Assembly (NCBI GenBank): GCA_964035545.1
Contig: CAXIUT010000228.1
Span: forward strand, 1-20,883
DNA: 20,883 bases
From: Bugula neritina
Taxonomy: Eukaryota > Animalia > Bryozoa
Direction of reading: 5' to 3'
Shown: positions 1 through 20,698 of the stretch, in pieces
How the letters are laid out: each line of letters starts with the position of its first letter
Position numbering within the stretch: position 1 is the first letter of the stretch
Program-made: the position numbers and the translations under genes
The notes under the pieces: generated by a model
The model's input: only the letters and a program-made list of their open reading frames with translations
What the model was told of the DNA's origin: nothing
The model's database searches: none

Positions 1-104
1 CCAACCCCAACCCCAACCCCAACCCCAACCCCAACCCCAACCCCAACCCCAACCCCAACCCCAACCCCAACCCCAACCCCAACCCCAACCCCAACCCCAA
101 CCCC
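1..104 (+). repeat. Left telomere, (CCCCAA)n
   Basis: Perfect C4A2 tandem array from base 1 to 104, the Tetrahymena-type ciliate telomere repeat. Confidence 0.99.
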
Positions 105-141: not shown

Positions 142-1255
142 ATGGCTCGTTAGATTATCAAAAGGAATACTATTAATATATAACAAAATGAGTTAGTTCA
201 TTCTTTGTTGAATGTGATTCGTGGTCGAGAGAACAGTTTGATCTTTTTTTTAGAAATGGTTTCTCTTGAAACTTAAAAATACAATCCTACTCAGTATAAA
301 ACTTTTAAATAATAATTTATCACTAAACAAAAAAGTGCCACTCAAAATATCAAAACCATTATTTGGAAAATATCAAACTTTATCTCAACAAAGTATCTAT
401 TAGTATATGTAGTTTGATTAAATCATTTTGGAATAAGTTAAAAAATATCCTTAAAGTTGCCTTCTAGAGAATCAAAGTGATTTAAATAGTTGATATAGCT
501 GTTGAAAGGTTCTATTAACAAATATATAAAAATATAGATCTTTTTTATCAAACGAGTATGCCTATTAAAGAGCTTTTGTATATTTAGCAAATTTTACAGC
601 AAAGAGCTGTTGAAATAATATTAAGTGTAAAGAAGAGTAAAAGTAATAGTTTTAGTTGCAATAAAATAAGAAGTGAAACTATTCTTAAAAAGAAAAGTAA
701 TCAATAAAGAAATCATTCGGCTAATAAAATTAGATAAAAACAAATAACTGCTGTTGATGAATTAACTATTATCAAATAGTCAAATAGAAGTAAAAGAAAA
801 ATGAAAATAAAAAGTGGATAAGTAGATTACAAAAGGTATTATCAATTATACATAGATGTCAAACTTCATTAAATAGACTATAAGGCAAGTTAACTGATAT
901 TATGGAGAGTAAAATAGATTATCAGATTGATAGAAAGAAGACTCAGAGCTAGAATTAAAATATATTGTTTTAGTGTCTTTTTAATAGAAATATTAATAAC
1001 TTAAGAATAATTGGAAAATATCAATAGAATTGTAATTGCTTTATGGAGAAGATTAAAAAGTTGAAGGAAAAGTAAATTCGTCGAAATAAAGCTAAATTTA
1101 TGAAGAGATTGGTTGAAAGTGAGTGTAGATAGAACAGAGAGGTGAAGTAGAAGGAGACAAGTGGTAAGATATTGAGACAGAAAACTTAGAAGGGAAAGAA
1201 GGTTTTAATAAAGAAGTAGTAAATAAAAGCCAAGAAAATATCTACATCAAAATGA
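142..1255 (+). CDS. Hypothetical basic (K/R-rich) protein, 357 aa, 2 introns
   Basis: ATG at 142 and TGA at 1253-1255. The frame is open with TAR=Glu after removing 20-nt introns 393-412 and 836-855 (1074 nt = 358 codons). No domain recognised. Confidence 0.8.
393..412 (+). other. 20-nt spliceosomal intron
   Basis: gtatctattagtatatgtag; removal restores the frame; A at -6. Confidence 0.85.
836..855 (+). other. 20-nt spliceosomal intron
   Basis: gtattatcaattatacatag; removal restores the frame; A at -6. Confidence 0.85.
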
Positions 1256-1306
1256 TAATTTTTAAACTAATATCTTGTTATAATATTTACAATTGAATTC
1301 TGAAAG

Positions 1307-4300
1307 ATGAACCACGTTTTATAGTTGAATTCTAGACGGTATATAGTACGGCAGCAGCATCAAAAAATGATGCTTTTGACATTTCCTTCCTTGAAGTTAC
1401 TTCATAAACTATATCTCAATACTACCTTTTCTTGTATTAATAAACAAACTAAAGAGATTATGTCTATCTATCAAAATTAAATTACTATTATTAAAGCAGT
1501 AGTAAGTCCTTTGCAATTGGCTATTACTCAACAAACTTTTATTGATTGGCAAGCTAGTGGAGGAATACTCATGGAACATGATATCGTCCTCTATAGTCTT
1601 CATGGCATTGTTTTTTATAACAGAGCAAGCGATATTGAAAAGGCTTGGCAAGTGGAGGTGATTCAGGATATATAGGAAGTGAAAAGTAGTCCTGGAGATG
1701 AAGTTATTGCTATGAAAGTAAAATAACCCAATAATTCATTGTTTATTTGGAGGATAGCTTAGCCTTCAGTCAAACCACATCAATAGATAATCTTAACACA
1801 GCCGATAGTTCAATGGTAGTTCATTTATAATAATCTTTTAGCTATACTAACAGCATCATAGCTTCGTATATACATTTTAGGTTCTCAGCAGCAATTTAAC
1901 TTATATCATTTTTATTTGATAAATGCTCGTTCTTTTTGCTGGATAGATTATCCTCTGGTCGATAGGGAGCAAAGACTATCAGTGAATAACGTTATTTTGA
2001 TGTAGAGAAGAGCTATAGCTAATATAGTGGAGTTATACTAGTTGTAGAAGCGAGTATTGGAATCTTAGTGTTCTGTGATAGGGTCTATTTTATTAAGGTA
2101 CAAATCTGTGAATATGAAAAGAGTTATTGGTTGTTGGAGGGAAGAGGATCGGATTGGACTGGTATGTTAGACTAAGAATAGAGAGTTATTTACTTTTGAA
2201 ATGAACAGGAAGATGAAAATATACCGAGTGAAGGCCAATTAGTAGTGTTTGGGTGCTAATGTCAATGAAGTATATGTGAATGGTAATTTGTTGCTGGTTA
2301 AAGATAGAACTCGTTGGAAATATTATAAGATAAAAGCTGAGAAGACATATTAGTTGTTGGAGTAGCTGGATTGTTAAAAAGCTTTTATTGGTTCTTAAAA
2401 TAAGATATACTACTTGTATTAACAAGCTGTTTATATAAAAGAGGTGGGAGGGATGCGTGGTGATCCAATTGCATTCAAATATCCTGGTGTTTAGAAAATA
2501 CACTACTTGAATTCAACTAAATAGGCATGTTATATCATTGCTGGTATAAGATTTTTCAAAATAACAGATACTGCTGTAACATCAGTAGGTTTTGCTATCA
2601 AAAATGAGAAAGCTGAGTTAGTCTATATTGATCGATTGACTCAGACTTTAACTTATCGGATGGGATCTCAGAAGATGTTGTTAAAGTACCAGATCGGTGC
2701 AAAGGTGACAGTTGTTATGAGCAAGTCGAGTAGCAAAGATTTGGTGGCAGTGAAGGGCGGGAGATGGATATAGCAAGATGAGCAAGAATTTACATTAGGA
2801 ATGGGAGATAAAGTCCTAGCTACTTTTTATTTATCAAAGTTGTTAAAGATACTTGACAATGAAAACAAGTTATTCCAATATTCAATTCACAGTATAAGCG
2901 GAGACGGTCTTATTTTGGTTCTAAAGAACTATGTATTTTTTTTACAAGTGGTATAGGACGAGAGAGGATGTGAGATAGTATTGATAAAGAGAAGTAATAC
3001 AGTTTTATATCATCGTTTTAATCCTCATGCTCATGTAGTTAAATTAGTGGATTCATCGAATCTATCATTTTGGATTGGAAATAGAGTTATACAATTGGGT
3101 GGTAGAATCAATCCTCATGCTATTATCGATCCATACTTGCCTCCTTAAACCTTAATGGCTAAACAGCTAGAATTGAAAAGAGTTTTTCCACCACATCATC
3201 CGAGAATATTAGAATTGTTGATTTAAACTAATAATTTGACTTTGGTTTTGGAGTTGATAAAAGTTGTTAGAAAATGGTTTTTAAAGAAATAACATACTCT
3301 AGCTTAGCTACATAAAGATATTGGAATAGATTTTGTTTCTGATATTTTATGGAGTAATAGAGAAGAAGATCTAAGTCGATGGCCTTAGCAAAAAACTATC
3401 TAATAGTCATAATTGATGAAAACATTTGCAACTGAGATGATGGATAATTTTTAATAGATAAATTTGAAATAAAGAGGTCCATTCAGATTTGAAAGTATTC
3501 TTCAATCTCTTGCTTATTTTTTATCTAATTCTAGAAGTGTAGATTATTTTTCACAATCGACTCTTATTTTGGCCAAGAGTTCAATTATGAAAGGAAAAGC
3601 TTTGAATAGCATGCATATTGCTCAACTAATGCACTCTTTAAATAAATAAGAAGCAGCTCTTTAGTTAAAGCCTGAGAAAGTGACTTGGGAATGGATGAAG
3701 GAATATTCTATTCCTTTTTGGATTGGAAATAAAGAAATGCTAAGAAAGTGGATTTAGTAATTTGCTGGAGCTGAGTATCGTAGAAGTAAGGAACCTTTTG
3801 ATTGTTTGTTTTGGTATTTGTTGGTTGGAAAAAGATCTTTGGTTACTACACTTTTTAAAAATCATAAAATAGATTCAAAATAACACGATTCAATAGCTAA
3901 CTTTTTGACTAGGGACTTTACATAGGCAAAAAACCGTTCAGCTGCTATAAAAAATGCCTATGTTTTGATCGATAAGAAGAGATATTTACATGCTCTAGCT
4001 TTTTTTATTTTAGGTGAATCGATTGATGACTGTATGCGTTTCTGTACAGACAGATTGAAAGATATGAATCTGACTTATACGTTTATATTGTTTTTTAAAG
4101 ATGCTGACATAAGTTATTTGTTATCTGTAATGTAAAAAGGAGATATATGGATGAGACATATAAGATATAAGATAGCTGGAGAGCATATTAGAAGTTATAA
4201 TTGTCTTTTTTAGGAAAATGACCAATTAAATTGGAGTTATCAGCCTCCGTTGACTGGTTTCCATCCTGCAGCTATTTAATTTGCACAAAAAATAAGAAAT

Positions 4301-6604
4301 TCTGTTCCTGTTAGAAGATAACTATAGGCTCAAAATCAAATAAATCAATCAAGTAATGACATTTTTGATGATTTTTTTGGATCATCTTCTACCACAGTCG
4401 AATAAACTAAAATATAAAAGATATAACTCAAAGGTGATATTGATGAGTTGAAACCTCAAGCTGTTGGGTATTTTTTGAAGGAAGGAGTGCCTGTAATGGC
4501 TTTGGCTATTTAGGATTCTAACTAGGAAGCAAAGTAGGCTTATTCTTTTTAATTATACAAGTTAGGAGGAGAAGTTTAGGCTTCCATGGAGTCAGTGGTG
4601 ATTGGACTTGAAGATAAGTTAGCTATTTTTAAATGTTATAAAGCAAATAAAAAAATTAATTAAATAGTGAGTTTTATCTAGAAATAAATATAGAAGTTTA
4701 AATATAATTTAGGACATGTTCATTTAGTGCAAATAATTGAGACTAAGAAACATATATTGGGCTAGATATTACATTTTGGTTATTTTGCATAAAAAATAGT
4801 AATACTGTAGCAATAAAGATAAGATGAGTAATAGAAACCTAGTTCTTACAGCAAAGTGATTTAACAGTTGATAGTGTTATCAAAAGTGAGTAAGATATTG
4901 GTTTGTTTGATTTTATAAGATTTTTAAGACCTTCTTCAATGCATATAGGATTTAAGATAGCCTAATTTAAAAGTTAATGTTGATTTATGGTAAAGATTTA
5001 GGACACTTTATGATGATGTGGTATAGCATAAGAAAGCAAAACAGCTAAAACAAATGGATTATTTTTAACATGCTTTTATTTCTACTTATAGAGCTATCAA
5101 AAAAGAATAAATATATAGAATGGAACTTTAAATAACTTCATAGTAAGCTGCTATTTTGATAATTAAGATATGTGTTTTGACATATTTATCAAGAATAAGA
5201 TTCCCTGTACAATAAGAGTTAGTATAATTGAAAAATACTAGCTTAGAATATTTAAATAACTGGATCACTAGCTATAAATATACAAATATTGTTGACTAAT
5301 ATAGAATTCTGTTGAGAGAAGGCACTCAATCTAAATTAAAACTATCTGTATTAAATCATGTTTTTGATAAATATTTTATTCAGGTCTTTGATATTATGAC
5401 CATTGTTCATTCCGGATTCTTTTAACAACATTTTATATCTGCTCAATAAGATAAAATACATGAATTGCAAGCGATTTAGGTGTTTAGAAATAAACAAGAT
5501 GGATTGAAAAGTTTTATTATTAATAAACATTAAGGAAAAGGTCTTTAATGTATAGCTTTATTCAAAAGATTGATTAAAAAGTTTTAATTATGTGAGAATC
5601 TGGTTAAAAGATAAAGAACTAGAGATAGCTATGGATTATTAGCTTAAGATAGTGGGTATAACAATGTATCTCAAATAGACCCTATAGTTTATTTAAAAGC
5701 TAAAAACCCGCCTCCAATTGATTAAGCTTTAAATTGGATCATAAATAAAAGAAAGTATCTTAGTGAGAAAGATTTTCCTAGAGTTAATGCTAATTTTTCT
5801 GAGAAAGGGTATATGAGACAAATAGAAGCACCATATTTGGATTATAATTAACTTAATTCGATAGAATGCCATCCTTTTCTTCCTTTTTATCTCATAGGCG
5901 GAAAAGGTTTGATATAAGTTGGTCACATGAACAATCTTAAAAATTTTGATAGAGTTAAGTGTCCAGGTATGAGCTAAATAGTCAAATTGCATTCTAGTGG
6001 TCAGAGAGTAGGAGCTATAGATTCTTCAGGAAATTTAGGTTTATATAATTTTGATCCATCATTTCATAATAACTGTGTCTATTCTTTAAAGAAAAATTCA
6101 ATAATAGACTTTTGCTATCTCAAACCAAGTGTTCTAGCAACTATATCTCAATCGTCATTGCAAGTTATTGACACTTTGATTCATCCTAAAAGACAAATGC
6201 AATTCAGACAGGCATTCAATAAAGATCCAGTTGAAGTGACAGCAACAAAAGACAATAAAATAATAGTACTAAGAAAGAACTAGGTTTTGATTTATGACAT
6301 TCGAATGTAGAGGTTATAAGGTTCAAAAGATTTAAAAGGAAAGGGAAAATCTATTTATTTATAGGATAAGGTACTATATGTGGGAATGTCAGATTCAAAG
6401 GTGAAAGCTTTCGATGTTTTCAATGAAAATAACAACTACGAAACAATTCGAGTGGGATCATCAGGTATAAATAAAATTAATATAGATGATAAAGATCGAT
6501 AAAGTATTGATCAGTTGATAGGCTATGACAATATAATAATGGCGATGAGTAACGAAGGTTCTATTTACTATTTACCTCAATTGGGCAAAGATGCGTTCAA
6601 GTGA
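1307..6604 (+). CDS. RAV1: Rav1/DMXL (rabconnectin-3 alpha, RAVE complex)-like WD40 protein, ~1760 aa
   Basis: A single 5298-nt frame with no internal TGA. The Rav1p_C-like block at ~3180-4090 reads FPPHHPRILELL...TWEWMKEYSIPFW...LRKWIEEFAGAEY...PFDCLFWYLLVGK...ANFLTRDFTEAKNRSAAIKNAYVLIDKKRYLHALAFFILG, matching the DMXL motif AALKNAFSLLGKQRF..AAFFLL. C-terminal WD repeats include ECHPFLPFYL, VIDTLIHP and IYDIR. Probable 21-nt intron at 6465-6485. Confidence 0.9.
6465..6485 (+). other. Probable 21-nt (3n) intron
   Basis: gtataaataaaattaatatag fits the GTA...AYNTAG consensus. It is frame-neutral, so it cannot be proven from DNA alone. Confidence 0.6.
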
Positions 6605-6684
6605 TAAGAATTCTTTATAAAGCTATTTATGTTAGTTAATATATAAAGTATGATATAAGCTATAGATTTAATTATCAAATAAAG

Positions 6685-7291
6685 ATGACAAACGTGAATC
6701 ACAAAATAAACCAAGTAAAAATCATTCTATGAAGTACGAAGATAAAGTTAACAGTCTTTATAAACAAATATAAGGACTTGAACAATAGGCCAAAAACTAT
6801 CTACAAAAATCAAAAGAATCGAAGGGATCTGCTCGATAAATGTATAAGCAAAAGTGTATGATGGCTCTCAAAAAAAAGAAACAAATCGAACAACAAGCTA
6901 AAAATTATAATTCTCATCAAAATATGCTTCAGCAGGCAGCTTTCAATATCTAAAATGCTCAAAACCAAAAATAAATGGTAAAGTTTTTGTTATTTAGTAT
7001 GCAGGCCTTCAAACAGCAGTTTAGGCTCAGAAATAGGCGATCAAAGGAGTTGATGTGGACAAAATGTATGATATCCAAGATGAGATGATTGATATGAAGA
7101 TGCAGAGTGATATGATGAACGAAATGATGAACAGGAACTATGACATGGATGTCGATGAGGACTAGTTCTAAGATGAGTTTATGGAGTTTCAGAAGGAAGT
7201 AGCTATTGAGAAGAAGAAAAATCCTAATATTGGGAATATCAAAAAGGAACAGGTTCCTTCACAGTCTATCGACGATATTCTTAAAATGTGA
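6685..7291 (+). CDS. VPS60: Snf7-family ESCRT-III subunit, Vps60/CHMP5-like, 188 aa, 2 introns
   Basis: Reads YKQKCMMALKKKKQIEQQ...QQAAFNIENAQNQKEM...VDVDKMYDIQDEM...MNRNYDMDVDEDEFEDEF. Introns at 6715-6734 and 6978-6997; TGA at 7289-7291. The family call is firm; the subfamily is less so. Confidence 0.88.
6715..6734 (+). other. 20-nt intron with AAG acceptor
   Basis: gtaaaaatcattctatgaag contains an in-frame TGA. Removal joins ATG 6685 to the Snf7 frame. Confidence 0.8.
6978..6997 (+). other. 20-nt spliceosomal intron
   Basis: gtaaagtttttgttatttag; required to keep the Snf7 domain in frame. Confidence 0.92.
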
Positions 7292-7300
7292 TAGATATCA

Positions 7301-8278
7301 TCAACAACAGCTATAATATTTATTATCAAGCAAATTGCAACCTGATTCGATCTTTTGACTCTCTTAGAAAGTGGGAATAAAAGATTGCCAGCTTTGTATG
7401 GTTTAGTTTCCACTATTTCTGGTGGGCTAGGTCATAAAATTAATCCAATTCTGGATGATTCCTTTGGAGAAAGGATTGTATCCAGAAGGAAGATGCTTTA
7501 GATAGCTGATATTTCTTTTTCTCCAGTGTTCCCAAGTAGTAATTCCACTTGAAATGATTGCAGTATGATATATAAGAAGATATCCTGTGAAAAAGATAAA
7601 CCCAAGATCTAAGAGCATAAGAAGGAATATTGACCATGTAATGAGGTAATGAAGTTCTAGCTGAAGATAATCAAAATAGGAAGGTAATTGGTAAATAGAA
7701 ATGAAGGTAGAAATATTATTGATTGTCTGAAAGAAGAGAAAAAGATAAAAAGGTTTATGGTTATGACGACCTACACAGTTTCCTATCCAGAAACAGTGAT
7801 GATCAAACCTTTAAATGCACACTTGACATTTTCTACAATGTTTAGTTCGATAATCACAAGTTATTTTACATTTTTTGCAGTAATATTTATTAGGTTTTTT
7901 TGAACCTAATAGTCCATTCTAACTTTAATCATTTTATGGCTAAATTTCTTATTTCAGCTAAACTGATATAGTAATAGGAGTCGTATCTATTTTGTTGCAT
8001 TGAAGATAAACTTTAAGAGCTAAATAGTAAAAGAGAAATGATAATCCAATATTGCCAAAAGAACAAATCAAAGAGGTTTTACTAATCTATGAAGCAAAGT
8101 TTTATCCTTTTTCATAGTATTATTAAAGTATGCAGAGATAAGCGAAAAAGATTCCAACCATTGTAGTTGGTATAAAGCAAAAATAGAAACTTTTAGCTCC
8201 GTCATAAGCTTGTTGCTCGTGTAAAGTTAATATTTTTCGTAGTTGTTATGGTTGAGTTTAATGGTATTTATTTTCCAT
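7301..8278 (-). CDS. DHHC protein S-acyltransferase (palmitoyltransferase), 325 aa, intronless
   Basis: Reads [45 protein letters not shown], with 4 hydrophobic segments, a TTWE motif, [12 protein letters not shown] and C-terminal DNKYYSCC. Ends in TGA-TGA. Confidence 0.96.
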
Positions 8279-8287
8279 AATAACAAT

Positions 8288-8601
8288 TCAAAAGATAATT
8301 ATGAGTATTATAAGAACAATCATGAGGCAACAGAGTAGCCAGCAGGCACAAATTTGATTAATATCTAAATAGCTAAAATATTACCATGAGTTTATAGAAG
8401 TTATCCTATTTATTGATTGAGTTCTTTAAGTCTTCCAGTCGTTAAATCTACCTATTAGTCTAGTTGCCCTATCATCCTGTTTTGCCTATTAACTTCATTA
8501 TTAATATTTTGGCCTGTATGCTTCATTCTAGATGCAATTTAGTGTATTTATTCAATATGTTCGTCTTGGTCTTGTTGTAGTCGATGATGTCCGTATTGCA
8601 T
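8288..8601 (-). CDS. Minimal Qc-SNARE (syntaxin-6/8, Tlg1 or Bet1-like), 97 aa, 1 intron
   Basis: Reads QDQDEHIEEIHEIASRMKHTGQNINNEVNRQNRMIGQLDEEVDLTTGRL, with the 0-layer Q. C-terminal TM segment is ICACWLLCCLMIVLIILIIIF. Intron at 8365-8384. Confidence 0.9.
8365..8384 (-). other. 20-nt spliceosomal intron
   Basis: gtaatattttagctatttag on the minus strand; removal joins the SNARE motif to the TM anchor. Confidence 0.9.
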
Positions 8602-8634
8602 TTAATATTTGATTATTTAGATTAGTAGTAAATG

Positions 8635-8677
8635 ATTATCAGATAGTAAGTTATTATCAGATAGTAAGTTATTATCA
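8635..8677. repeat. 18-bp tandem repeat, 2.4 copies, overlapping a stop codon
   Basis: ATTATCAGATAGTAAGTT at 8635-8652 and 8653-8670, plus a partial copy at 8671-8677. Confidence 0.93.
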
Positions 8678-9514
8678 AATGAAGAAAGAACGGCTTATTT
8701 TTTGTTGTATTTGGGAGGCTTTTCTTTGGGCATGATTGACTTATCGAAGAAAACCTTTAAATCTTTCTTTTCTTGCTAATTTAAGAGTAGAATTATGATT
8801 TAAGTCATAAAAATGTTAGTAGTTGACATTTGATCGATATTTCATTGTATTTATATTTGTTTTTTCAAGATTAATGAATTTCTCTTATTGTTCTTAAAGA
8901 AGCTATTTTCTAATAAGCTATCTTTCTTATTTAAGATATCCTTTTCTCAATGTCTATTTTAAATTCAATGTTTTTTATAATTCTTATTGTTTCTTTGAAT
9001 AATTATTGATTGTTTTATTATTATTGTTAAATTGTTATTTGAATTATTCTTCATTTATTTCTTTAAGGTCAGAATAGCTATCTTATTTTTCATAACTTTT
9101 TATCACAGAATCTGGTCGATATTTTCTATGTTTTTTATTACTGAACTTTTTAGTCTTTATTTTAGGTGATTATTCACCCATATTTATTGCTTTATCGATT
9201 ACAGGAGATGATTAAGGTAAGTTATTTATCTTTCTGTATTATTTCATATCATCTTGAACCTTTTTTATCTAATTTTTGACATAGTTTGTTGAATAAGAAG
9301 TTGCTGAATAATTGCTTTAGAGACTTTAACTGCAAAAACTTTAATTTTAAGAATTATTTTATTTATTGAATGAATTATCAACAGCATTGTTTAATAATTA
9401 TTCGATAACTTTTTGTCTTGCTAGCTCTTCATATAGATTAGTATCTAAATAGGATATTTATTCTTTTTTATTTTTAATTTGTTCTTCTAATCCATAAAGT
9501 TCATAGTTTTACAT
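8675..9514 (-). CDS. Hypothetical low-complexity/coiled-coil protein, 279 aa
   Basis: An 840-nt frame from ATG (9514) to TGA (8675) with no internal TGA. It begins ATG-TAA (M-E-N-Y-E-L-Y-G-L-E-E-Q). Confidence 0.8.
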
Positions 9515-9572
9515 TGTTAATAAATAACAGACGATTTATCAATACCCTATCTTATATTAAAATTATTCACGA
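9515..9572. promoter_or_regulatory. Putative bidirectional promoter (58 bp)
   Basis: AT-rich spacer between two divergent ATGs. Positional inference only. Confidence 0.4.
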
Positions 9573-10987
9573 ATGAAGTGTAGTTAGTCTCCTCCTGATA
9601 ATAAGCAAAATTAGACTACAATAAGAACTAATAGTAAGTATGAACCACTTCGTAAACCTCATTTTAGGTTGAGAGAGCTAAAAAACTCTGGAACCAATAG
9701 AATAGATATATCATCATCTCCAAAGAGAACAAATGAGATAGTAACTCACGTTAGTATGGCAAATCAAACGATGAGAACAAGAGATAAAAAGATGAATAAT
9801 ACTACTAATAACTTTTATAGCAATTTATCTAAAATTGTAAAGGTAGGGTCGCCTTAGAGATAGGAGAGAAGTTCAATGAGAAAAACCTTTTTCAATAAAA
9901 GAAATAATCATGAAAGTAGTCCTTAGAAATCGACTCCTTCGAACTCACTTATTTTTAATAAAACAAGCGTTAATTTTCATAGACAAGATATCTTCAAGAA
10001 TGAGAACAATAATAACTATCTCAATAAATATAAAATTATCAAATAGTTAGGAAAGGGATGCTTTAGCACTGTTTTTCTAGCTAATAAACAAAATAACATC
10101 AATAATAGATTTAGCAAGTCTCCTCTTTAATTTAATCCTTAAGTAGATGAAGATGGAAATCCTAATTTAACAGAGATGATCAATCAAAGAAACGATATTC
10201 TTCCTCGTTTAAGTCAGGAACAAAGTTTGAAGAATAGTTAGACTACAAATGAATCATAATCTAATTTGGTGGCTATTAAGGTGTACTAAAAGTTTAAAAT
10301 GAACAAAGATCCTAGTAAATTTAAAAATATCAAAAAATAGATAAACATAATGCAAAATTTGAATAACTAAGGTGTGATAAAGTTATACTAGAGTGTATAA
10401 ACTTTGACGAAAATAAGTTTAGTTGTAGAATATGGAGGTGAAGAGTCTCTGCTTGAATATGTAAAACACAACTATCCTTTATCTATTGAGACAGTAAAAA
10501 GTATAAGTTATCAATTGATAAAAGCTATTTCTTATTTGCATGATAAAAATATTGTTCACAGAGATATTAAACTTCAAAATGTATTGATTAATAAAGACAA
10601 TATCAAACTCATTGATTTCGGTTTTAGTTGTCTAAGTATCTTTCTACCTATATAGCCCATAAACAACAGAAGTTAAGTGCTATTTGTGGAACTCCTAACT
10701 ATATGGCTCCAGAAGTGATCAGTAAGAAAGAATATATTGGTGAGCAAACTGATATTTGGTCTTATGGAGTTGTTGTCTTCGCACTAGCATAGGGACGACA
10801 TCCTTTCAAAGCTGAAAGTTATAGTTAACTGTAAAGACTAGTTAATAAAGGTAAATATTAGTTTAGAAAAACTTGGTAGCAACCATTTAAAGACTTTCTC
10901 AATCGAATACTAAGAGTAAAGGCATCAGAAAGACCAACTTCTCACGAAATAATGCAGATGCGTTGGTTGAAATAAATCCAACAATGA
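9573..10987 (+). CDS. Ser/Thr protein kinase, CAMK group (MARK/AMPK-like), 464 aa, 1 intron
   Basis: Motifs present: [58 protein letters not shown] and ERPT. Intron at 10636-10655; TGA at 10985-10987. Confidence 0.96.
10636..10655 (+). other. 20-nt spliceosomal intron
   Basis: gtatctttctacctatatag; required to link DFG to the APE motif in frame. Confidence 0.95.
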
Positions 10988-11014
10988 TTAATAATATTCA
11001 TTTGTTATAAAAAG

Positions 11015-11563
11015 ATGTAATCCGTAAAATCTTTATTCAAATGGGACATGCCAATCATATCTAAGCCACCAAAGAAAAAGTTCATCGAAAAGATGCCTTT
11101 TTTGGTGGATCTTGATCATTGTAATAGATTTAGACCTCTATTTGATGGAAATACATTTCGGGAGGAAGTTTTTGATACTGAAGGATAAATTATTTCATTT
11201 ATTGATCAAAAAGCAAAGAAAGAATATGAGAGTTATTCTGATAATAATAAGTATGTTACTTATTGTATTGGAACTGTTGGAATTATGTTTGCTGCTTTTT
11301 GTCATAAAGTCAAGTTTATCAGTCGTTTATTAGGATAGAAATCATGGAAAATGTTTAGTTTAAGGTTACTTTTTGTTGGCATTCCTTACTATTATATTGA
11401 GAAAGTAATGCCTTAAATATAAGAAGAGCAGATTTCTTTACTTTATTCTAAAGTGAAAGATAAGTATAGACAATTTAAATTATCTGGGGATTTAATAGCA
11501 TTAAACAAAGATATAGAACTCTAAGATTTTATTCTAAAATAAGGAAATTAAGAGCTAATTTGA
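11015..11563 (+). CDS. Hypothetical small membrane protein, 182 aa
   Basis: aaagATG context and a 549-nt open frame to TGA. Hydrophobic segments are YVTYCIGTVGIMFAAFC and MFSLRLLFVGIPYYYI. Confidence 0.78.
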
Positions 11564-11608
11564 TTTCGATATGATAACTTTTATAGAATATTATATTTAA
11601 CTATCGAT

Positions 11609-14523
11609 ATGTAGTGGGAATTCAGGAAGTCTCTCTAGTCATTTGAAGGATACAAAAGAACTGTTTCAATTAGAAACTAAATAGAAAATGGAGATTAAAG
11701 TGCACTTGGCATTGTGGTAAGAGAAATTTAGTTGATTCTTAATGATAAAAATTAAAAAATTTTACCTAAAGTTTTGGCAGTGAGAGTATGATAGTTAATA
11801 TGTAGTTTGCAAGAGATATTATGATATTGGGACAGGAAGAAATAGTTAAAAGAATTTAAAAGTTGGTCCCTCAGCTGACTAAAATATGTTCTCATGATAT
11901 GACTTCTCCAGATCCTGATCGAGGATAAACTTTCTTTCAAGATCATCCAGGTTCATTTCTATTCATACAGCTTATTTAAAGGCAAGCAATGAAGATGAAA
12001 AGAAAGAGATTGAAACTCTTGGATCAACATATCTGATATTAAGTTTAGAATCGATTTTTCACTGGGCTAAATGGATTCCTTTTGATTCTAATGGGCAATA
12101 AAGTATTTATGTTAAAGCTTATCAAAGTTTGATTGATCGAGGAGTTACTTTTCCTTCATCTTTTCACTACTACAAACAATCTGATACAGAAAAGTATTTC
12201 ACTTTTTATCTAGATTTAAAAATACTTATAAAATGTAATTTTTTACTGATAGTTATGAATCAGCATATTCTGAAAATTCTTCATCAGTTCATCAATCAAG
12301 GATAAGTGAAGATGAGAGACAAAGTCGATCTGGATGGGAGAAGAAAAGTAAAGCTTAGGATTCAAAAGGGTTTCATACAAGTTAAGAATATACTGGTTAA
12401 GGTAGATTTCTAAAAACTGTTCCTGAGATGATGGAGTATCTAGGTGATCTTAGAAAGAATAAAAGTAGAAAAACTGGTCCTTTAAAGTAAATTTATAAGA
12501 CAGTTCAAGATATGTATGAAATTAGAGGTTAGCTAGGTAAACTTCCAAAAGATGAAAAAAGATGGGCATAAAATTATATCATAAACTATAGTCTTTTTAG
12601 TACTAATATGATAGGTTATGATGAGCTGCTTCAACGTAGTCTTTCTCAAGAAGTTGTTATATAGTAAGGAATTCAAGAGGAAGATATCACAATAAACAAA
12701 TAAGCTAAGCAGACTCCAATTAAATTTCATCAATTAAACCCTCAAAAATCTATAAAAGACTCAAGCAAGATTCAAAGGAATGAACTAGGAGGTTCTCGAG
12801 CAGATTCATAAATAAAAAAACAAGAGTATTAGTTGAAAGTCAAATTGAATTCATTAGCTGTAGAAGTCGAGTAAAAAGATAACCAGATTGCAATTATAAA
12901 ATCAAATCATGAAAAGTAGAAGAATAGAATAATTGAAGATTACGAGACAAGGATAGAGTTGATAAAGATAGAGGTGAAGAAGGGACAAAATGATCGAGGG
13001 TCATTTTAGAAATAGTTGTAAAAAGAAAATAATAAACTAAGGCATAGAGTAGCTAGTCTTTAATAATAACTTAATAGCAATAATTATAATACCAATAGAT
13101 AGAGAGATTTAGAGTCAGAAAGAAATCATCTTTTGACTAAAGTCAAGAGACTATAGCTTGAAAATTAAAAATTACAACAAATTAAGGTTGTTAATAGAAA
13201 TGCTGATAAATAAGTTGTTAATTTATAAGGCGTTATCAAAGAAAAACAAAGTAGTTTGGAAATGTTGAAAGCTGAGTTAAAAAAATCAGAAAAAATATGT
13301 CAAAATTATCAAGATGAAGCAACTCTCTACAAATCATAACTGATAAATTAAAGAGCTAAGCATTAACAGAAGATGAATACTTTAGCTAAATCTAAAGGAG
13401 GTTTAGATCAGTAAACTAAAGCATTGAAATAGAAAGTTTTGGAATATCGAAAAACACTAGATATCAAGGAAATATAAACTTTGAATTTAAGAGAATAACT
13501 CAAACGATATCAATCTAAGGTTAGAGATTTTAACTAGAAAAAATCTATAGCAGGAGTTGATACTTATCGAAATGAACATTTGATTAAAAGCAAAGCAGGA
13601 CAGTATCAGTCACCAGCTAGATTACAAAGTCCTATGCAGTAATTATAACCTTTTCGAGGCAATGTATATAATAATTAAAAATAACTAAAGTTTAATAACT
13701 ATGAGGACTTATATCTAGAGTTGAAGCCTAATAATAAGGAATTATTTATCAGATTATGTAGATGTGGATTTAAAAGAAAGGATATTTTATTGAAAGAAAA
13801 TGAGTTGTAGATAGGAATTATTAGTGATGTGATATCAGAGGGAAAACTTAAATTTGTATTACACTTTACTAATACTTCTTAAAAACAGGTTTAAAACCTT
13901 AAAATAGACTTCAATATGGCCAACTCATACATAAGTACTCTTGACTATTAAATTTAAAATAAGTATAATATTATTATAATTTAGATATATTTTTTGCATT
14001 CAACCTCAAGAACAAGAAAAGGTTATAGTTGTTGTTAGTAATAAGTAGCCTCCTTTTCTCAAATAAAGAGCTATCCTTGAAGTGTCTTTTGAGTATTATA
14101 TATTTTATATAGAAAACATGGCGCTATGTATAGTAGTAATATCTTTTTACCTTTTCTTATTCCTAAATTTTATGACTTCTACAAGCCCAAAACAATAAAA
14201 CTTCCATAAAAGAATAAAAATCCAAGATAGATGATCCAATTTCGTTATAGTAAAAAGATGATACCGAAACCAACTAGCTTGAGATCTTTTTTCGAATAGA
14301 TCTAATAAATATCATCAAATGTATAAATTATTTTACTTAGAGATTCTAAGTTGAGGCATATCATCGTTTGACAGATCTTTCTGTCAGGTTGCTTTTAACT
14401 TTAGCTCCTGATACTTAGGCTTTGCAATTGGATGTTATGGCATTGAGGGAGAATATAAATTAGAAACAGAGATATGTATTTTAATAGTTGATTAGTTTCA
14501 TGGAAATTGCCTTTAGAAGATGA
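11609..14523 (+). CDS. Putative trafficking adaptor: VHS-like N-terminus + coiled coil + alpha-adaptin-appendage-like C-terminus, 930 aa, 6 introns
   Basis: Open after removing 11786-11805, 11951-11970, 12194-12213, 13963-13984, 14093-14112 and 14321-14340 (2793 nt). VHS-like end: LESIFHWAKW...YVKAYQSLIDRGVTFP. Ear-like region: FIRLC...ILLKENELEIGIISD...KFVLHFTNTS...IQPQEQEKV...IFLPFLIPKFY. The gene model is firmer than the domain calls. Confidence 0.75.
11786..11805 (+). other. 20-nt spliceosomal intron
   Basis: gtatgatagttaatatgtag; contains an in-frame TGA. Confidence 0.88.
11951..11970 (+). other. 20-nt intron, GTT donor / CAG acceptor
   Basis: gttcatttctattcatacag; restores the frame; A at -6. 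Confidence 0.82.
12194..12213 (+). other. 20-nt spliceosomal intron
   Basis: gtatttcactttttatctag; restores the frame. Confidence 0.85.
13963..13984 (+). other. 22-nt spliceosomal intron
   Basis: gtataatattattataatttag; restores the frame; A at -6. Confidence 0.8.
14093..14112 (+). other. 20-nt spliceosomal intron
   Basis: gtattatatattttatatag; restores the frame. Confidence 0.85.
14321..14340 (+). other. 20-nt spliceosomal intron
   Basis: gtataaattattttacttag; restores the frame to TGA 14521. Confidence 0.85.
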
Positions 14524-14592
14524 TTTAAATATTTGTATTAACTTTTATTTTAAATATATTATAGAACTAAAAATGATAGAAAATATACAATT

Positions 14593-15559
14593 TCAAATAT
14601 CTCCTTCGGGCAAGGCTTTTATGGAAGATAATTTACATCCTTTTTGATAAAAACTACTTTTAATGTTTTTCTTCAATTAAGATATTTAATGAGTGCTTTT
14701 CATTGTTTTTTTGCTATTTAAAGTTGGTAATCTTGAATTTGGTATTTTTTCATAAACTTTTTTTGGATTTTTAACTTCTTGTCGATCTTTATTAATTTTA
14801 TACATAGTTGTGAGGACACTGATCGAATTATTTTTTGGAGATTTGAATCCACTGATTAGAATTTTTTATGCATTATATCCATAGTTGTATTGTTGATTTT
14901 TTTAAGGTTTTTTTTTTTTTTACAAGTAAGTTTGGAGGTTTTTCATCTTGCATTGTTTATAATGATTCAATTCTTTATTTTCTTTGTCTATGAAAATTCT
15001 AAATTTTAGTTGTGCTAAAATCTTTTTGAATTTATCCTTCGAGAGGAATAAGTCCTTTTCCAGTGGAAAATCGATAATGTTTGGAATTATTAACACTATG
15101 TGATGTTCTTTATATTCCTAAAGATGATACAATGGAAAGTATAGAATCTCTTTTCTACTTGATTTGATATTCTTGTTTACACTAGCCTATAGCTTATCTG
15201 ATGCATAGATAATCATTGATTACCCTTTGAGGTTCTTACTCTTGATTTATAGTAATATCGTTAACATAGACATTTGGAGATATACTGGTATTAATGGTCA
15301 TTTATAATTCTCTAATAACAAGATTTAGATGTTTTCGGAAGTTATTTTATTCAATAACTTTTATTTAAGTATCTACTTTATCAACTACGTCATCAATGAT
15401 GTTATTAACAATTTTGAAGGCACTGGGAAAGGGGTATCGATTAAGAAAGACGTGATTTTAGTTGAGAAGAGGTCCTGTATGAGTAAGAGTGCTTTTTCTT
15501 TGTTTGACAAGAGTGTTTACTTTTCTGAGCGATACAAGATTTTATGTGTTTCTTTTCAT
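14593..15559 (-). CDS. Hypothetical protein (~321 aa) with an apparent 1-nt frameshift at an A14 run
   Basis: ATG at 15559. Read as given, the frame ends at TGA 14750-14752 (269 aa). Dropping one base of the homopolymer at 14908-14921 gives a frame running to TGA 14593-14595. The 3' end is therefore uncertain. Confidence 0.65.
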
Positions 15560-15600
15560 TTTTCCAAATAAATGTTCTAAAAAGTAAAAAATAATATTAA
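15560..15600. promoter_or_regulatory. Putative bidirectional promoter (41 bp)
   Basis: AT-rich spacer between two divergent ATGs. Positional inference only. Confidence 0.35.
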
Positions 15601-16749
15601 ATGCATAATAAAAGCTATCTAACTTATCACCCATAAGTAATCAAAAAAGTAACTGAAACATCAATAAATAAATCACTGAAAATGCCCTAAATGAATATCT
15701 AGTAAATGGCTGCTTAACTAATCCACAAATAGCGTATGAAAGTATCTGAACTAAATATTCAAATCAGTGCTTATAGAGTTCAAGTATAACTATAAGAAAA
15801 CAATAAAATTGATCATGGTCCATACATTTAAAGTATTGAACGCGAAATCAGTAATATTCACAATGAGTAAGTTTATGTTAACTAACAAATAGCAAATTGT
15901 CAGCAAGTGGAAAATCAAGTTACACCTATGTAGTATTATTTATGGAAAAAGAAACAAAGAATTAATACCTATGATGCATCTATCAGCTAGCTGTGCAAGG
16001 AAATATAATTAGAAAGAGAAGAACTGGAAAATGCTATTGAGGACTACAAGCATGAAGGGTAAGAAATGATTGGATAAATATAGAGATTGGAAGAAAGATT
16101 AGGACAGTTAAACAGTTCATCACCAGATGCTAAAGGATCTAGGAAAAATAGTTTAGAATAAACCTATGAGTAGTTGAATGCCTAGAATCGTAAATTAAAG
16201 GAAGAGTATTCTAATTTAAGTAATAATCATGACTTTTTGCAGTAGAACAAAGATATTGTTGTTATGAAGATCAGCGATAATATAAAATCTATTGAATCTA
16301 CTTTGAAGAATTACTTTTAGGGCGAAAAGAGTAAGTTAGTTAAAGAGTTTAAAAATATTCAATTTTAATCAAAAAATTACTAAATATCTCCTATAAATTC
16401 ATAGGAACAAAAATACAAGATAGATCCTCTTCTACATGACTATGCTTTCAAATTGAAATAATTATATAATGCAGCTCCTGAAGAAATACAGAAAGTTATC
16501 GTCAATATAATGCAACCTTTGGTTTGGTAAAAGTTTTATTGGAAAGATTTTCTAGAAGTGGAGCCTAAAAGTGAACAAATTTACACATAATATCGAAAAC
16601 TCTAAGCGGAATACATGTAGAACTAGTAAAAAACATAAAAATTGCAGCAAATGATAAAAGACACAAGTAATTAGTTGGCTAATGAGCAAATGCGATCAAC
16701 TGACTTAACATATAACATAAAGAAGTTGAGAAAGCAGGTTAAGAAGTGA
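15601..16749 (+). CDS. Hypothetical coiled-coil protein, 382 aa, intronless
   Basis: A 1149-nt frame with no internal TGA and E/K/L heptad-like composition. Ends TGA-TAT-TGA. Confidence 0.83.
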
Positions 16750-16767
16750 TATTGATATTGTATGAAT

Positions 16768-17232
16768 TCATTTATCAAAAGAGTGTTAGTCGATATTATA
16801 TAGCATGATATCTAACTTGGAATTTCTTTGGAGTTGTTCTTGCGCATATTTTTCATATGATCCCAGAAGTTCTTACTAGTTGAAGGAGGCATTAGCAGGT
16901 ATTTTCAATTTATATTCAAGATATTTCTTTAAGAACAATGCCTCTCTGACTTTTTATTATTCTTAGAGTTAATGCTAATTGATCGAGTTCTGATAAAAGT
17001 TGTATTTGGCGTAGAAGTATCCCCAAACCACAAATGTTAGCATCACTGTCTTCTATATCCAGCTTACAAAACTGAGTTGGATATTGCGGGAACGAATGTA
17101 AGTGTGTAAAGCAAAGAAGGATCCTAAAGTGAGACCCCATTTGATAGATGTAAAAGTATAAGGATACCTGAAGATATATTTCCCCTGAAGGTAATCTAAT
17201 TTTTTAATTGAGAGTCCATCTTATTCTGACAT
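16768..17232 (-). CDS. Two-TM protein, possibly COX20-like, 154 aa
   Basis: A 465-nt open frame reading RYPYTFTSIKWGLTLGSFFALHTYIRSRNIQLSF...MLTFVVWGYFYAKYNFY, followed by a charged helix. The CDS is solid; the COX20 resemblance is tentative. Confidence 0.75.
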
Positions 17233-17294
17233 CTGATCAGAAAATATATGTTAGTATGTAAATGACTTGAAATATTTCTTTATTGATAAAAATC
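17233..17294. promoter_or_regulatory. Putative bidirectional promoter (62 bp)
   Basis: AT-rich spacer between two divergent ATGs. Positional inference only. Confidence 0.35.
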
Positions 17295-20200
17295 ATGTTT
17301 GGACCAGCTCAAAATGTGTCAAATCAACGTGGATATCCTGTACCTCAGGCAGCTCCAGCTAACAACTTCCCTCAACCTTACTACTAACAGGTTAATTACG
17401 CTTAGAATCCAAGCCATTAAATGGTTGGAACAATGATTAATCGATCCTAATCTCAGTATCAACAGGGTTATCCTGGTAACATGCCCAATCAGCCTTCATT
17501 GATTCAACCTCCAGCTTTAAATGCAGAAGAAAATATAAACACGAATTCTCAGTTTATACCACAGGGAAATGGAAATAATAATTAACAGAGTTAGTTCTAG
17601 GGATATCAGAATCAAGAAGGAGGATGGAATGAGGAAATGGCAGCTGTTTTTTGGTAGCAGAGATGTATGACAATACTTGACCGTTTTCAATGGTTTTTTT
17701 AGAGGTTTTAAATATTAAAGGAGTAGTATGGAGGATTGAGTGACTAAATGCAAAAGATGGATTCTTAAGAATAATGGCATCAATTTCAAATGCATCATGA
17801 CTAGTTTCACGAAAAGTAGTTCTTTATTAATGAAGAATATTATAGATGGAACAGTAGTTGGCAGCTGTTTTAAATGAAAATTAACAACTAATGGAACAAA
17901 AAATGTCTCATGATAATTAAAATGTTTGGTAACAGCGATATCAGGAACTATTGGGCAAGTAATATATCTATTTACTTAGTTTTAAATCATTGCAAGATGA
18001 TATGGCACATATTGAAGCCAATGGAGCAAGTAAAGAACCAGGATCTGGATCTGGAGTACCTCCCGAACAATATCAAAACCTAGAAGATCAATTTACATAA
18101 TTGGAGTATCAATATGGGTAAGTAGTGAAGGAGTTGCAAAAACAGCAAAGTGTAGATTACCAAGAGCAATATTAAATGCAGATCAATGACTATCGTCTTT
18201 AAATATAAAGTTTTAAGGTTAAATTTTAAAATTTACATCGATAAAACTAGTAATTACAGCAAATAATGGTCGATCTTTAGAAACAGAATCAATTTTTATC
18301 TGAACAAGGAGATCAGAGATATCAGGAATTAGATAGGATAATTCAACAAAAATAGATTGAAATCGAACAGTTACAAAGAGATTTTAGATAAAAAAGTGGT
18401 AATCAGGAAATGGTAAAGCAATATGAGATGGCTTTAAATTAGAGAAACAAGTAAAATGAGGAATTAAGACAGGTTTTGATGAATCGGGATACGTAGTGGG
18501 TAAGTGAAAGGATGAATATGCAGACTAATGAAGAGTAATCTCGTAGATTTATGCAAGCTTAATTTGAAAAACAAATTGTTCTCAAAGAATAAAATATAAA
18601 ATAAATGGAAAAAACTATCCTTGGTTTACAGAATAGTAGTAAAGTGAATGCTGATAGTAGTCAAAAAATATAAAATCTATAGAAGAAATTAAGTCATTTG
18701 GGGCACTAAGTAGTAGCTTTGAACTAAAGTTTAAAGAAGAAAAATCAATAATTAGTTTAATTAAGAGGAGTTAGCTATTAAGTTTAAAAATTAAGATAAA
18801 ATCAAGAAGTCTATGGAAAAATAGCCTAGGAAAAGGAAAGATTAGTTGATAATTTAAAGAAAAAGCAAAGTTAGTTAGATGGAATGCATAAGTAGATAGA
18901 ATAGTTAACTATGAGAGTTCAGTAGGTTACCAATAAACGTCAATAGTATTCTACTCGCAACTTGATGGCTTAAATATAAGATTTGAATGATCAGATCAGA
19001 AGAAACTAGGGAGAGATTAGTCGAATTAAAAGTATAATATAGTTGAAAGAAGAGTATTGTCTTCAATTATAATAAGATCTAAAAAAATCTAATTAAAAAT
19101 ATATCATAGCCGAACAAACTTTATCTTTCTAGCGTGGAAATTGGAGATAAAAAGAGTTAAAGTTAACCAGTAATACCTCATAGCATGAGAAAAGAATTAA
19201 AAATTTAGATTATTAGTTTAATCTACAATTGAAAGATAACCTTGAAAGAGAGATTAGTTCATTAAGAAAACAAAAAGGAGAGAGATAATAAGTGATTCGT
19301 ACAATGGAAGAAACTTAAATAATATTAAGATCTAAGATGGCAGTTTTATAGAAGCAGAAAGGCAATTTTGATCGTGATATAAATTTGATGAAGAATAAAT
19401 AGCACTAATTGGAAAGAATAAATGCTGAGAAAATGAAAAAGATTAAAGAATTATAAATTGCTTGTCTCTACAAGTAAGAAGACCTTGAAAACTATAAACA
19501 ACTTAATCTAAATATGAGTAGTGATGTTAGTAGAAGTCGTGGAGAAGTTGAAGAGCTGAATTGTTTAATTGGAGATAGAAATAGAGTTATTGAAGATTTG
19601 CAGAAACAAATTAAAGAACAGATTGGTAGAAACGAAGTAACTGACAGAATTAAAATAGAAAATAGCAAGTTGAAACTATCATTAAGGACTCTTGAAGAAG
19701 AGCTAGAGAAGATGAAATTACATAATTAATCTAAGAAACAGAGCAAAGTTAGTCATAAAAGCTAATTTTAGAAATAATAGCGTTCGATGATAAATAGTTT
19801 ACAGCAGTAGAACCAATACTTGAAGCAATAGTTGGCAAAATCATTATAAAAAATGATTCCTACTTCTCAGAGAGAGATGCCAGTATCTCAGAAGGAGGTT
19901 ACTATGCGTGGATTTAATGATTATAAATCAAGTAGTAATGCTACAGTTGATTTAAACAAACGTTTGAACGAATTCAATAGTAAGTTACAGATGACTATTG
20001 GGAAGAATGATTTGCAGCATTCTCAATCTCAAAAATTGATATCTTTTTGGGAGAATGAAAGAAAAGATTTAATCTAAAAATATGAAGGATAAATTAGAGA
20101 ATTAAAAGGATAACTCAAAACGAAAACTTAACATTCACAGGTAACTTAGAATTTTAGAGGATAAAGTCAGAGGAGACAGACTAGAATGACTCTAGAAGAT

Positions 20201-20698
20201 TAAAGAATAAGAGAAGAAGTTGTATTTTTTAGACAAAAAGTGCAAGAAATGGAGAGAAGGAATTAAAATTTGATAAAAATTAATTAAGAGTTAAGAAGCA
20301 AGATTGACGGAGTTTTAAAAAATAAACAATCAGTTAGTACTAATGATTTCTACAAATAGCAAAATAAGTTACTTGAAAATGAAAACTAATCTTTGAAAAC
20401 TCGATTGAAGAAAATTGGAGAAGAAAATAAAGATTATAAAATATAGTTAGGTTCCCAAAACTCAAAGATAAATCAAGATTATTAATTCAAAATTTTGTAA
20501 TTGGAAATGACTATTCAAGAAATGCAAAGAAAAATATCATATTTACAAGTTCAAAAAATATCAATGCCAGAAAAATCTGTTGGATCACCCATATCGTCAA
20601 AGAGCAAACCTTTATCGCCAAAAGGAAAGAACAAATAAAGCCAATTTTTTAAACAATAAGTTGGATATGTATTAGGTCGAAGTGACTATTATAGTTGA
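17295..20698 (+). CDS. Large coiled-coil protein with Q/N/P/Y-rich N-terminus, ~1120 aa
   Basis: ATG at 17295, intron 17816-17835 and probable intron 17959-17979. After that a single frame runs to TGA 20696-20698 and includes the supplied ORFs at 19514 and 19853. Confidence 0.87.
17816..17835 (+). other. 20-nt intron with AAG acceptor
   Basis: gtagttctttattaatgaag; removal joins the N-terminus to the coiled-coil frame. Confidence 0.82.
17959..17979 (+). other. Probable 21-nt (3n) intron
   Basis: gtaatatatctatttacttag fits the consensus but is frame-neutral. Confidence 0.65.

Follow-up and report, generated by a model that had tools for sequence, protein, structure and literature searches.

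Introduction

The nuclear genetic code in which UAA and UAG (together UAR) specify glutamate (Glu), and UGA alone ends translation, was reported from peritrich ciliates by Sanchez-Silva et al. (2003, Curr Biol 13:442, as cited in PMC4967479), confirmed in the transcriptomes of Campanella umbellaria and Carchesium polypinum (PMC4967479, PMC10553269), and recorded for several Sessilida by Heaphy et al. (2016, as cited in PMC10089648). In C. polypinum, the release factor eRF1 has a GTS loop without Thr (PMC10089648). This work concerns a 20.9 kb contig deposited with the assembly of the bryozoan Bugula neritina (GCA_964035545.1, contig CAXIUT010000228.1, positions 1 to 20,883), referred to here as the window, meaning the whole stretch at its full length. 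The window is AT-rich (26-34% G+C content, GC), and its genes are very probably written in this same code, NCBI table 30 or the "peritrich" code, with UAA and UAG as ordinary Glu codons and UGA as the sole terminator. The organism is likely to be a peritrich.

All three assignments that define table 30 were tested in the window: Glu is the best-supported residue for UAA and, separately, for UAG, and UGA appears to be the sole stop. This is the code that a first-pass annotation, made from the letters of the window and a list of its open reading frames (ORFs), had named, and that identification agrees with published descriptions (PMC10553269, PMC4967479, PMC10089648). Hence a code of this type is rare but already described, and is not new. 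Its earlier record is drawn mostly from transcriptomes and individual genes, whereas here it is seen along an entire chromosome, from telomere to telomere, as well as in several uncultured relatives.

Three other systems are close to that of the window. The code of the ciliate Oligohymenophorea sp. PL0344 (PMC10553269) belongs to the same ciliate class and shares UAG as Glu and UGA as sole stop, but reads UAA as Lys, whereas UAA is assigned to Glu in the window and Lys is rejected with p about 1e-12. The ordinary ciliate code, table 6, used by Tetrahymena, Paramecium and Oxytricha, is alike in having UAR as sense codons, UGA as sole stop and heavy use of UAR in an AT-rich genome, but the amino acid is Gln rather than Glu. 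Table 31, that of the trypanosomatid Blastocrithidia (PMC12153298), shares UAR as Glu, but there UGA encodes Trp and UAA doubles as a stop, whereas in the window UGA is never found in frame and ends genes.

Open reading frames and termination

When TGA is taken as the only stop, ORFs in the window reach 5,298-5,301, 2,865, 1,896 and 1,461 nucleotides (nt), against a longest ORF of 384 nt with standard stops; across 200 mononucleotide shuffles, the longest TGA-only ORF had a mean of 1,264 nt and a maximum of 2,055 nt. Within eight long ORFs, TGA occurs at none of the 4,913 in-frame codons, as compared with 151 and 169 of 4,905 in the other two frames (3.1% and 3.5%), while TAA (4.1%) and TAG (2.6%) are equally frequent in and out of frame. 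It is therefore TGA, and neither TAA nor TAG, that is avoided in frame, and the latter two are sense codons, as which they occur in all genes of the window. The same eight ORFs contain 203 in-frame TAA and 126 in-frame TAG, such that Glu is encoded by TAA in 34.5% of cases, TAG in 21.4%, GAA in 29.5% and GAG in 14.6%, with UAR accounting for 56% of all Glu codons.

The first-pass annotation had stated that TGA is the only stop and that all 13 genes end in it. The second statement is partly circular, as the ORFs had been defined by TGA, but it holds independently for the DHHC and Snf7 genes: in both, the window and its relative L001 (one of the loci described below) align through the last codon, and TGA is the next codon in each. 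The first statement agrees with the absence of TGA from the 4,913 codons and with these shared stop positions. Neither an in-frame TGA nor termination at TAA or TAG was seen in the window, within which UGA thus seems to be the only terminator and not to be decoded as an amino acid.

Meaning of the UAA and UAG codons

A stop-free Rav1 segment, used to search metagenome contigs, led to six loci (L001-L006), and exact look-up of fragment proteins to four more (L007-L010). Their contigs derive from several unrelated metagenomes and one sequencing run, not from named peritrich transcriptomes, and represent at least five uncultured lineages (L001/L002/L003; L004/L005; L006; L007 and L008; L009/L010). 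The Rav1 orthologues in all ten are 33-57% identical at the amino acid level and open only with TGA as sole stop; the code is common to the whole clade of uncultured relatives. Gene order in L001 is that of the window: the upstream gene, Rav1, Snf7 and DHHC.

Codon alignments were made for four syntenic genes, retaining gap-free columns whose ten flanking positions were at least 40% identical. Against L001, the 43 TAA sites of the window face Glu 21 times, TAG nine, Asp six, Gln three, TAA twice, and Arg and Asn once each; the 42 TAG sites face Glu 17 times, Asp eight, Gln five, TAA four, TAG twice and six singletons. Lys was opposite neither, including 0 of 36 well-aligned columns for TAG. 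These profiles match that of the true Glu codons, as 73 GAA/GAG sites face Glu 42 times, Gln seven, Asp six, TAG five and TAA four. Control codons retained their own identities, with true Lys codons opposite Lys in 112/180 cases and true Gln codons opposite Gln in 47/89. The Glu fraction against L001 is the same for TAA (21/32) as for GAA/GAG (42/64), and for TAG it is 17/36 against L001 and 14/24 against L005. Glu is also the commonest standard partner in the reverse comparison and in lineages L006-L010. TAA, TAG, GAA and GAG interchange freely among species, in the manner of synonymous codons.

Likelihoods were calculated for each codon separately, using substitution frequencies from the same alignments, and Glu was the maximum-likelihood residue for TAA and for TAG against both L001 and L005; the next-best residue against L001 was Asp, with log-likelihood (lnL) deficits of 30 for TAA and 16 for TAG. 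Fisher tests rejected Lys (1e-11 to 5e-14) and also rejected Asn for both codons; those for Gln, Tyr and Asp, which were likewise rejected, are given with the corresponding alternative codes in the Discussion. The assignment of both codons to Glu by the first-pass annotation was thus upheld for each codon against two relatives.

That annotation had also proposed Codetta-style codon inference, which was carried out for Rav1. Of 150 Rav1/DMXL relatives recovered by an exhaustive, profile-free search, the five closest fragments were omitted and the remaining 145 used to build a profile of distant homologues. For TAG this favoured Glu (+6.6, with the next residue at +1.9), while for TAA it did not single out Glu, a result weighed in the Discussion. 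Fragments from the closer relatives (P0002, P0003, P0004, P0015) have Glu at the TAA of "WI[TAG][TAA]FAG" and at other sites, whereas more distant homologues have Lys or Gln at the former.

Variation within the species was assessed by mapping contigs of four public runs, which represent the same species at low coverage, onto Rav1. There are 22 population variants, of which 16 are synonymous in the proposed frame, and one is informative at a UAR codon: the GAG at 4445-4447 is TAG in runs X2 and X4. This is one more synonymous change if TAG encodes Glu, and lends the assignment a small measure of support.

Genes and diagnostic sites

The features of the window are as follows.

1..104: left telomere, (CCCCAA)n, from direct reading of the sequence
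142..1255, forward strand: first gene, function unknown, in several exons or frames; stop TGA 1253-1255
1307..6604, forward strand: Rav1/DMXL-like (RAVE complex) gene of 1,766 codons; Pfam Rav1p_C at 1.1e-14 for the piece 3926-4132
4445..4447, forward strand: GAG codon, replaced by TAG in other samples of this species (G>T at 4445, runs X2 and X4)
6654..7291, forward strand: Snf7/ESCRT-III family gene, two frames with a short intron between; stop TGA 7289-7291
7301..8278, reverse strand: DHHC palmitoyltransferase gene; Pfam DHHC at 3.1e-21; stop TGA 7301-7303
8320..8841, reverse strand: Q-SNARE-like C-terminal ORF, carrying LD[TAA][TAG]VD at 8446-8463
9258..10987, forward strand: Ser/Thr protein kinase gene; Pfam Pkinase at 3.1e-22 and 3.5e-13 for two pieces
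10338..10340, forward strand: TAG at the kinase alpha-C Glu position, by register 30 codons before the hinge Glu codon at 10428
12185..14080, forward strand: coiled-coil ORF of 631 codons; 32 TAA, 14 TAG and no in-frame TGA
14593..15640, reverse strand: gene of unknown function in two overlapping frames; stop TGA 14593-14595
15529..16749, forward strand: coiled-coil ORF of 406 codons; 23 TAA and 13 TAG; stop TGA 16747-16749
16768..17292, reverse strand: small ORF of 175 codons; stop TGA 16768-16770
17271..20698, forward strand: long coiled-coil gene in two frames (17271-18128 and 17834-20698); stop TGA 20696-20698
20795..20883: right telomere, (GGGGTT)n, from direct reading of the sequence

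Pfam, PDB and homology searches used stop-free pieces of these ORFs. The Rav1 gene contains 52 TAA and 45 TAG in frame, and no TGA before its stop at 6602-6604. Two pieces of the Snf7 gene match Pfam Snf7 at 19 and 21.4 bits, under the gathering score, and the L001 orthologue is 60-62% identical; the DHHC orthologue in L001 is 50% identical across 316 amino acids. ORF segments of the first gene have matching ORFs directly ahead of Rav1 in L001, L003, L004 and L005. A 27 amino acid piece of the SNARE-like ORF matches the SNARE motif of syntaxin 8 weakly (1gl2_D, E=0.018) and has no Pfam match, and no orthologue of this ORF is visible at the end of L001. The kinase gene lies in two frames, with the N-lobe in 9258-10718 and the C-lobe in 10616-10984, ending at TGA 10985-10987. 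Pfam gave no match for the first gene or for that at 14593..15640 (one piece of each searched), nor for the small ORF at 16768..17292.

The first-pass annotation had offered a set of individual UAR codons as diagnostic of Glu, and all the coordinates it cited are exact (10338, 10287, 10389, 10398, 7811-7813, 6951, 7163, 7169 and the SNARE pair at 8446-8463). Four of these sites are indeed informative, being Glu codons in L001: the TAA at 7811-7813 (reverse strand) within CI[TAA]RFDHHC of the DHHC gene is GAG, with 100% local identity, and in Snf7 the TAA codons at 6951 and 7169 are each GAG, while the TAG at 7163 is GAA. Two others are not diagnostic on their own. The SNARE pair falls between core layers in the heptad register, at surface positions, and the TAA in "NN[TAA]GVI" is at a variable position.

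The kinase gene carries UAR codons at 10287, 10338, 10368, 10389 and 10398, and the TAG at 10338 had been placed at the invariant alpha-C Glu. No kinase orthologue was found in the related loci, where the sole kinase, at 959-1834 of L005, is a paralogue spanning the C-lobe; the alpha-C assignment therefore rests on register. In alignments, the piece beginning at 10401 spans residues 75-148 of CDK5 and positions 71-146 of Pfam Pkinase, and the register was also taken against MARK and others. Residue 10 of this piece corresponds to residue 81 of CDK5 and to position 78 of the Pfam profile, putting the hinge Glu codon at 10428. The alpha-C Glu of CDK5 and CDK2 (E51) precedes E81 by 30 residues, and the TAG precedes 10428 by exactly 30 codons, in accordance with the proposed position.

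Codon usage among relatives

The relatives differ in base composition, with an overall GC of 26-46%: 0.45 in L001-L003, about 0.31-0.32 in L004/L005 and 0.26 in L009/L010. The share of UAR among the Glu codons of Rav1 is 26% in L001 (GC 0.45; interval 7349-12856), 49% in L005 (0.32; 7256-13111), 60% in the window (1304-6601), 64% in L008 (0.31; 2-2899) and 71% in L009 (0.26; 346-5709). UAR share rises as GC falls, and in lineages rich in AT the codons that once meant stop have become the principal ones for Glu.

In public protein collections, the Rav1 family of these relatives is present only as fragments of 76-142 amino acids (P0001-P0004 and P0015; L007-L010), called between TAA and TAG "stops", a direct sign of how the wrong code harms annotation.

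Chromosome structure and gene packing

Telomere repeats cap the window at both ends, and it is therefore an entire macronuclear chromosome of a ciliate, a gene-dense mini-chromosome with about 12-13 genes as counted before full exon models. The CCCCAA/GGGGTT repeat, which is familiar from Tetrahymena and Paramecium, indicates a ciliate and suggests one of the oligohymenophorean type. An Rfam scan of the window found nothing, and there is no rRNA or other marker within it. Pseudogenes and germline (micronuclear) DNA were considered as explanations of the window, and were rejected, as its telomeres, purifying selection and conserved synteny speak against both.

The genes are closely spaced. The first begins ~40 bp past the left telomere, and the last stop (20698) is ~100 bp before the right one; Snf7 and DHHC converge with 9 bp between their stops (7289-7303), and a second convergent pair with 18 bp (16747-16770), while neighbours on the same strand have 27-51 bp from stop to next ATG (1255-1307; 10985-11015). 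Such extreme packing means that adjacent transcripts must overlap or have almost no untranslated regions. Several genes switch frame over short overlaps (17271-18128/17834-20698; 6654-7085/6782-7291; 10616-10718), which fits very short introns. Antisense to Rav1, at 3483-5096 on the reverse strand, are TGA-free ORFs of 315 and 223 codons; BLAST even pairs these with antisense ORFs from the relatives, but they mirror the conserved sense frame and are not genes.

The contigs of L001 (47 kb) and L005 (97 kb) continue far past the point of the window's left telomere, and in L001 the upstream gene and Rav1 are set apart by about 4 kb that carries other ORFs. Lineages thus vary both in where their chromosomes break and in which genes these contain.

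Discussion

Several observations weigh against reading UAA and UAG as ordinary Glu codons with UGA as the only terminator. Firstly, the relatives have the same code, meaning that the argument depends on their GAA and GAG codons and on an interchange resembling that of synonymous codons, rather than on organisms using the standard code. Secondly, TAG is opposite Glu somewhat less often than are true Glu codons in the comparison with L001 (17/36 against 42/64, p=0.09). Thirdly, the distant Rav1/DMXL profile scores TAA at 4.4 for Asn and 4.2 for Glu, with Lys at -0.7, over 28 mostly unconserved columns; this split arises because most of the TAA sites fall in columns that are not conserved across the family. 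Fourthly, an ORF of 192 codons (10988-11563) continues in the same frame after the TGA of the kinase gene. Fifthly, ARAGORN finds no transfer RNA (tRNA) gene in the window or in loci L001-L006, and searches of sequencing runs found no RNA run with these genes. Nevertheless, the ORF statistics, the alignments and the conserved sites make table 30 the highly probable code of this chromosome.

By analogy with other reassigned codes, UAA and UAG would be read by one or two Glu-charged tRNAs with UUA and/or CUA anticodons, and the eRF1 would have lost recognition of UAA and UAG while retaining that of UGA; both components are encoded outside the window. It is unlikely that the organism and its uncultured relatives are instead a non-peritrich ciliate lineage that acquired UAR as Glu independently, or that UAR is decoded by tRNAs of unusual descent. 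If this were true, a complete genome with telomere-capped chromosomes would provide a first direct look at a switch from Gln to Glu.

The code could also depend on context, with UAR read as Glu within genes but UAA or UAG also terminating some of them, as in Blastocrithidia, or UGA also read as an amino acid in places, as in karyorelicts and Condylostoma. Codes of this kind exist (PMC4967479, PMC12153298, PMC10089648), and the 192-codon ORF in frame after the kinase TGA is compatible with one. However, this ORF has its own ATG 27 nt downstream (~11015) and two predicted hydrophobic segments, resembling an unrelated small membrane protein; it has no Pfam match, and the kinase domain ends normally ahead of TGA 10985-10987. 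It is therefore probably a separate gene for a small membrane protein, unrelated to the kinase. Furthermore, TGA is wholly missing from the frames of the eight long ORFs, and in DHHC and Snf7 the conservation between the window and L001 extends to the final codon, which TGA follows in each species. A context-dependent code is consequently very improbable.

The split code of Oligohymenophorea sp. PL0344, in which TAA is Lys, TAG is Glu and TGA is the stop, is a published code from the same class (PMC10553269), and a few sites are compatible with it: several TAA codons could take Lys as well as Glu (VY[TAA]K and sites in coiled coils), the distant-profile column of the TAA at 3758 slightly favours Lys at 0.17, and P0001 and P0048 each have Lys at one TAA site. 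Yet TAA is opposite Lys in 0/32 columns against L001 and 0/22 against L005, where true Lys codons are so in 112/178 and 85/115 (p=1e-12 and 2e-11); Lys is outside the six best likelihoods; and the swaps between TAA and TAG seen in 13/85 columns against L001 would all be Lys/Glu changes. This code can hardly be that of the window.

Table 6, with both codons as Gln, is just as hard to credit, even though no ciliate reassignment is commoner and Oligohymenophorea are inferred to have had it ancestrally (PMC10553269), and even though Gln ranks second or third among the partners of both codons. An equally minor share of true Glu codons faces Gln (7/73), and Gln is opposite TAA in 3/32 columns and TAG in 5/36, as compared with 47/87 for true Gln codons (Fisher tests against L001, p=6.5e-6 and 4e-5; against L005, 0.002 and 0.017). 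The lnL deficits of Gln are 53 for TAA and 41 for TAG against L001, and 9 and 6 against L005, while TAG at the kinase alpha-C Glu, and the GAG or GAA codons found in L001 at the DHHC and Snf7 sites, are also at odds with it. Table 29, with both codons as Tyr (Fisher p 1.5e-7 to 2e-14), and Asp for both codons (2e-6 to 4e-9, together with the lnL deficits given above) were rejected.

The choice of code has direct consequences for annotation, as the first-pass annotation had anticipated. Table 1 or table 11 shatters every gene in the window, limiting ORFs to at most the 384 nt noted above, whereas table 6 would turn ~6.7% of the residues in the eight long ORFs (329/4,913 codons, 56% of the glutamates) into Gln, altering the charge at each; table 30 is therefore advised for the assembly. 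A literature search found no open paper on a peritrich macronuclear genome. Beyond the earlier record, this work adds a complete chromosome and at least five uncultured lineages, between which the UAR share goes from 26% to 71% of Glu codons with falling GC. The genome opens the tRNAs and the eRF1 behind the peritrich code, still undescribed, to direct study.

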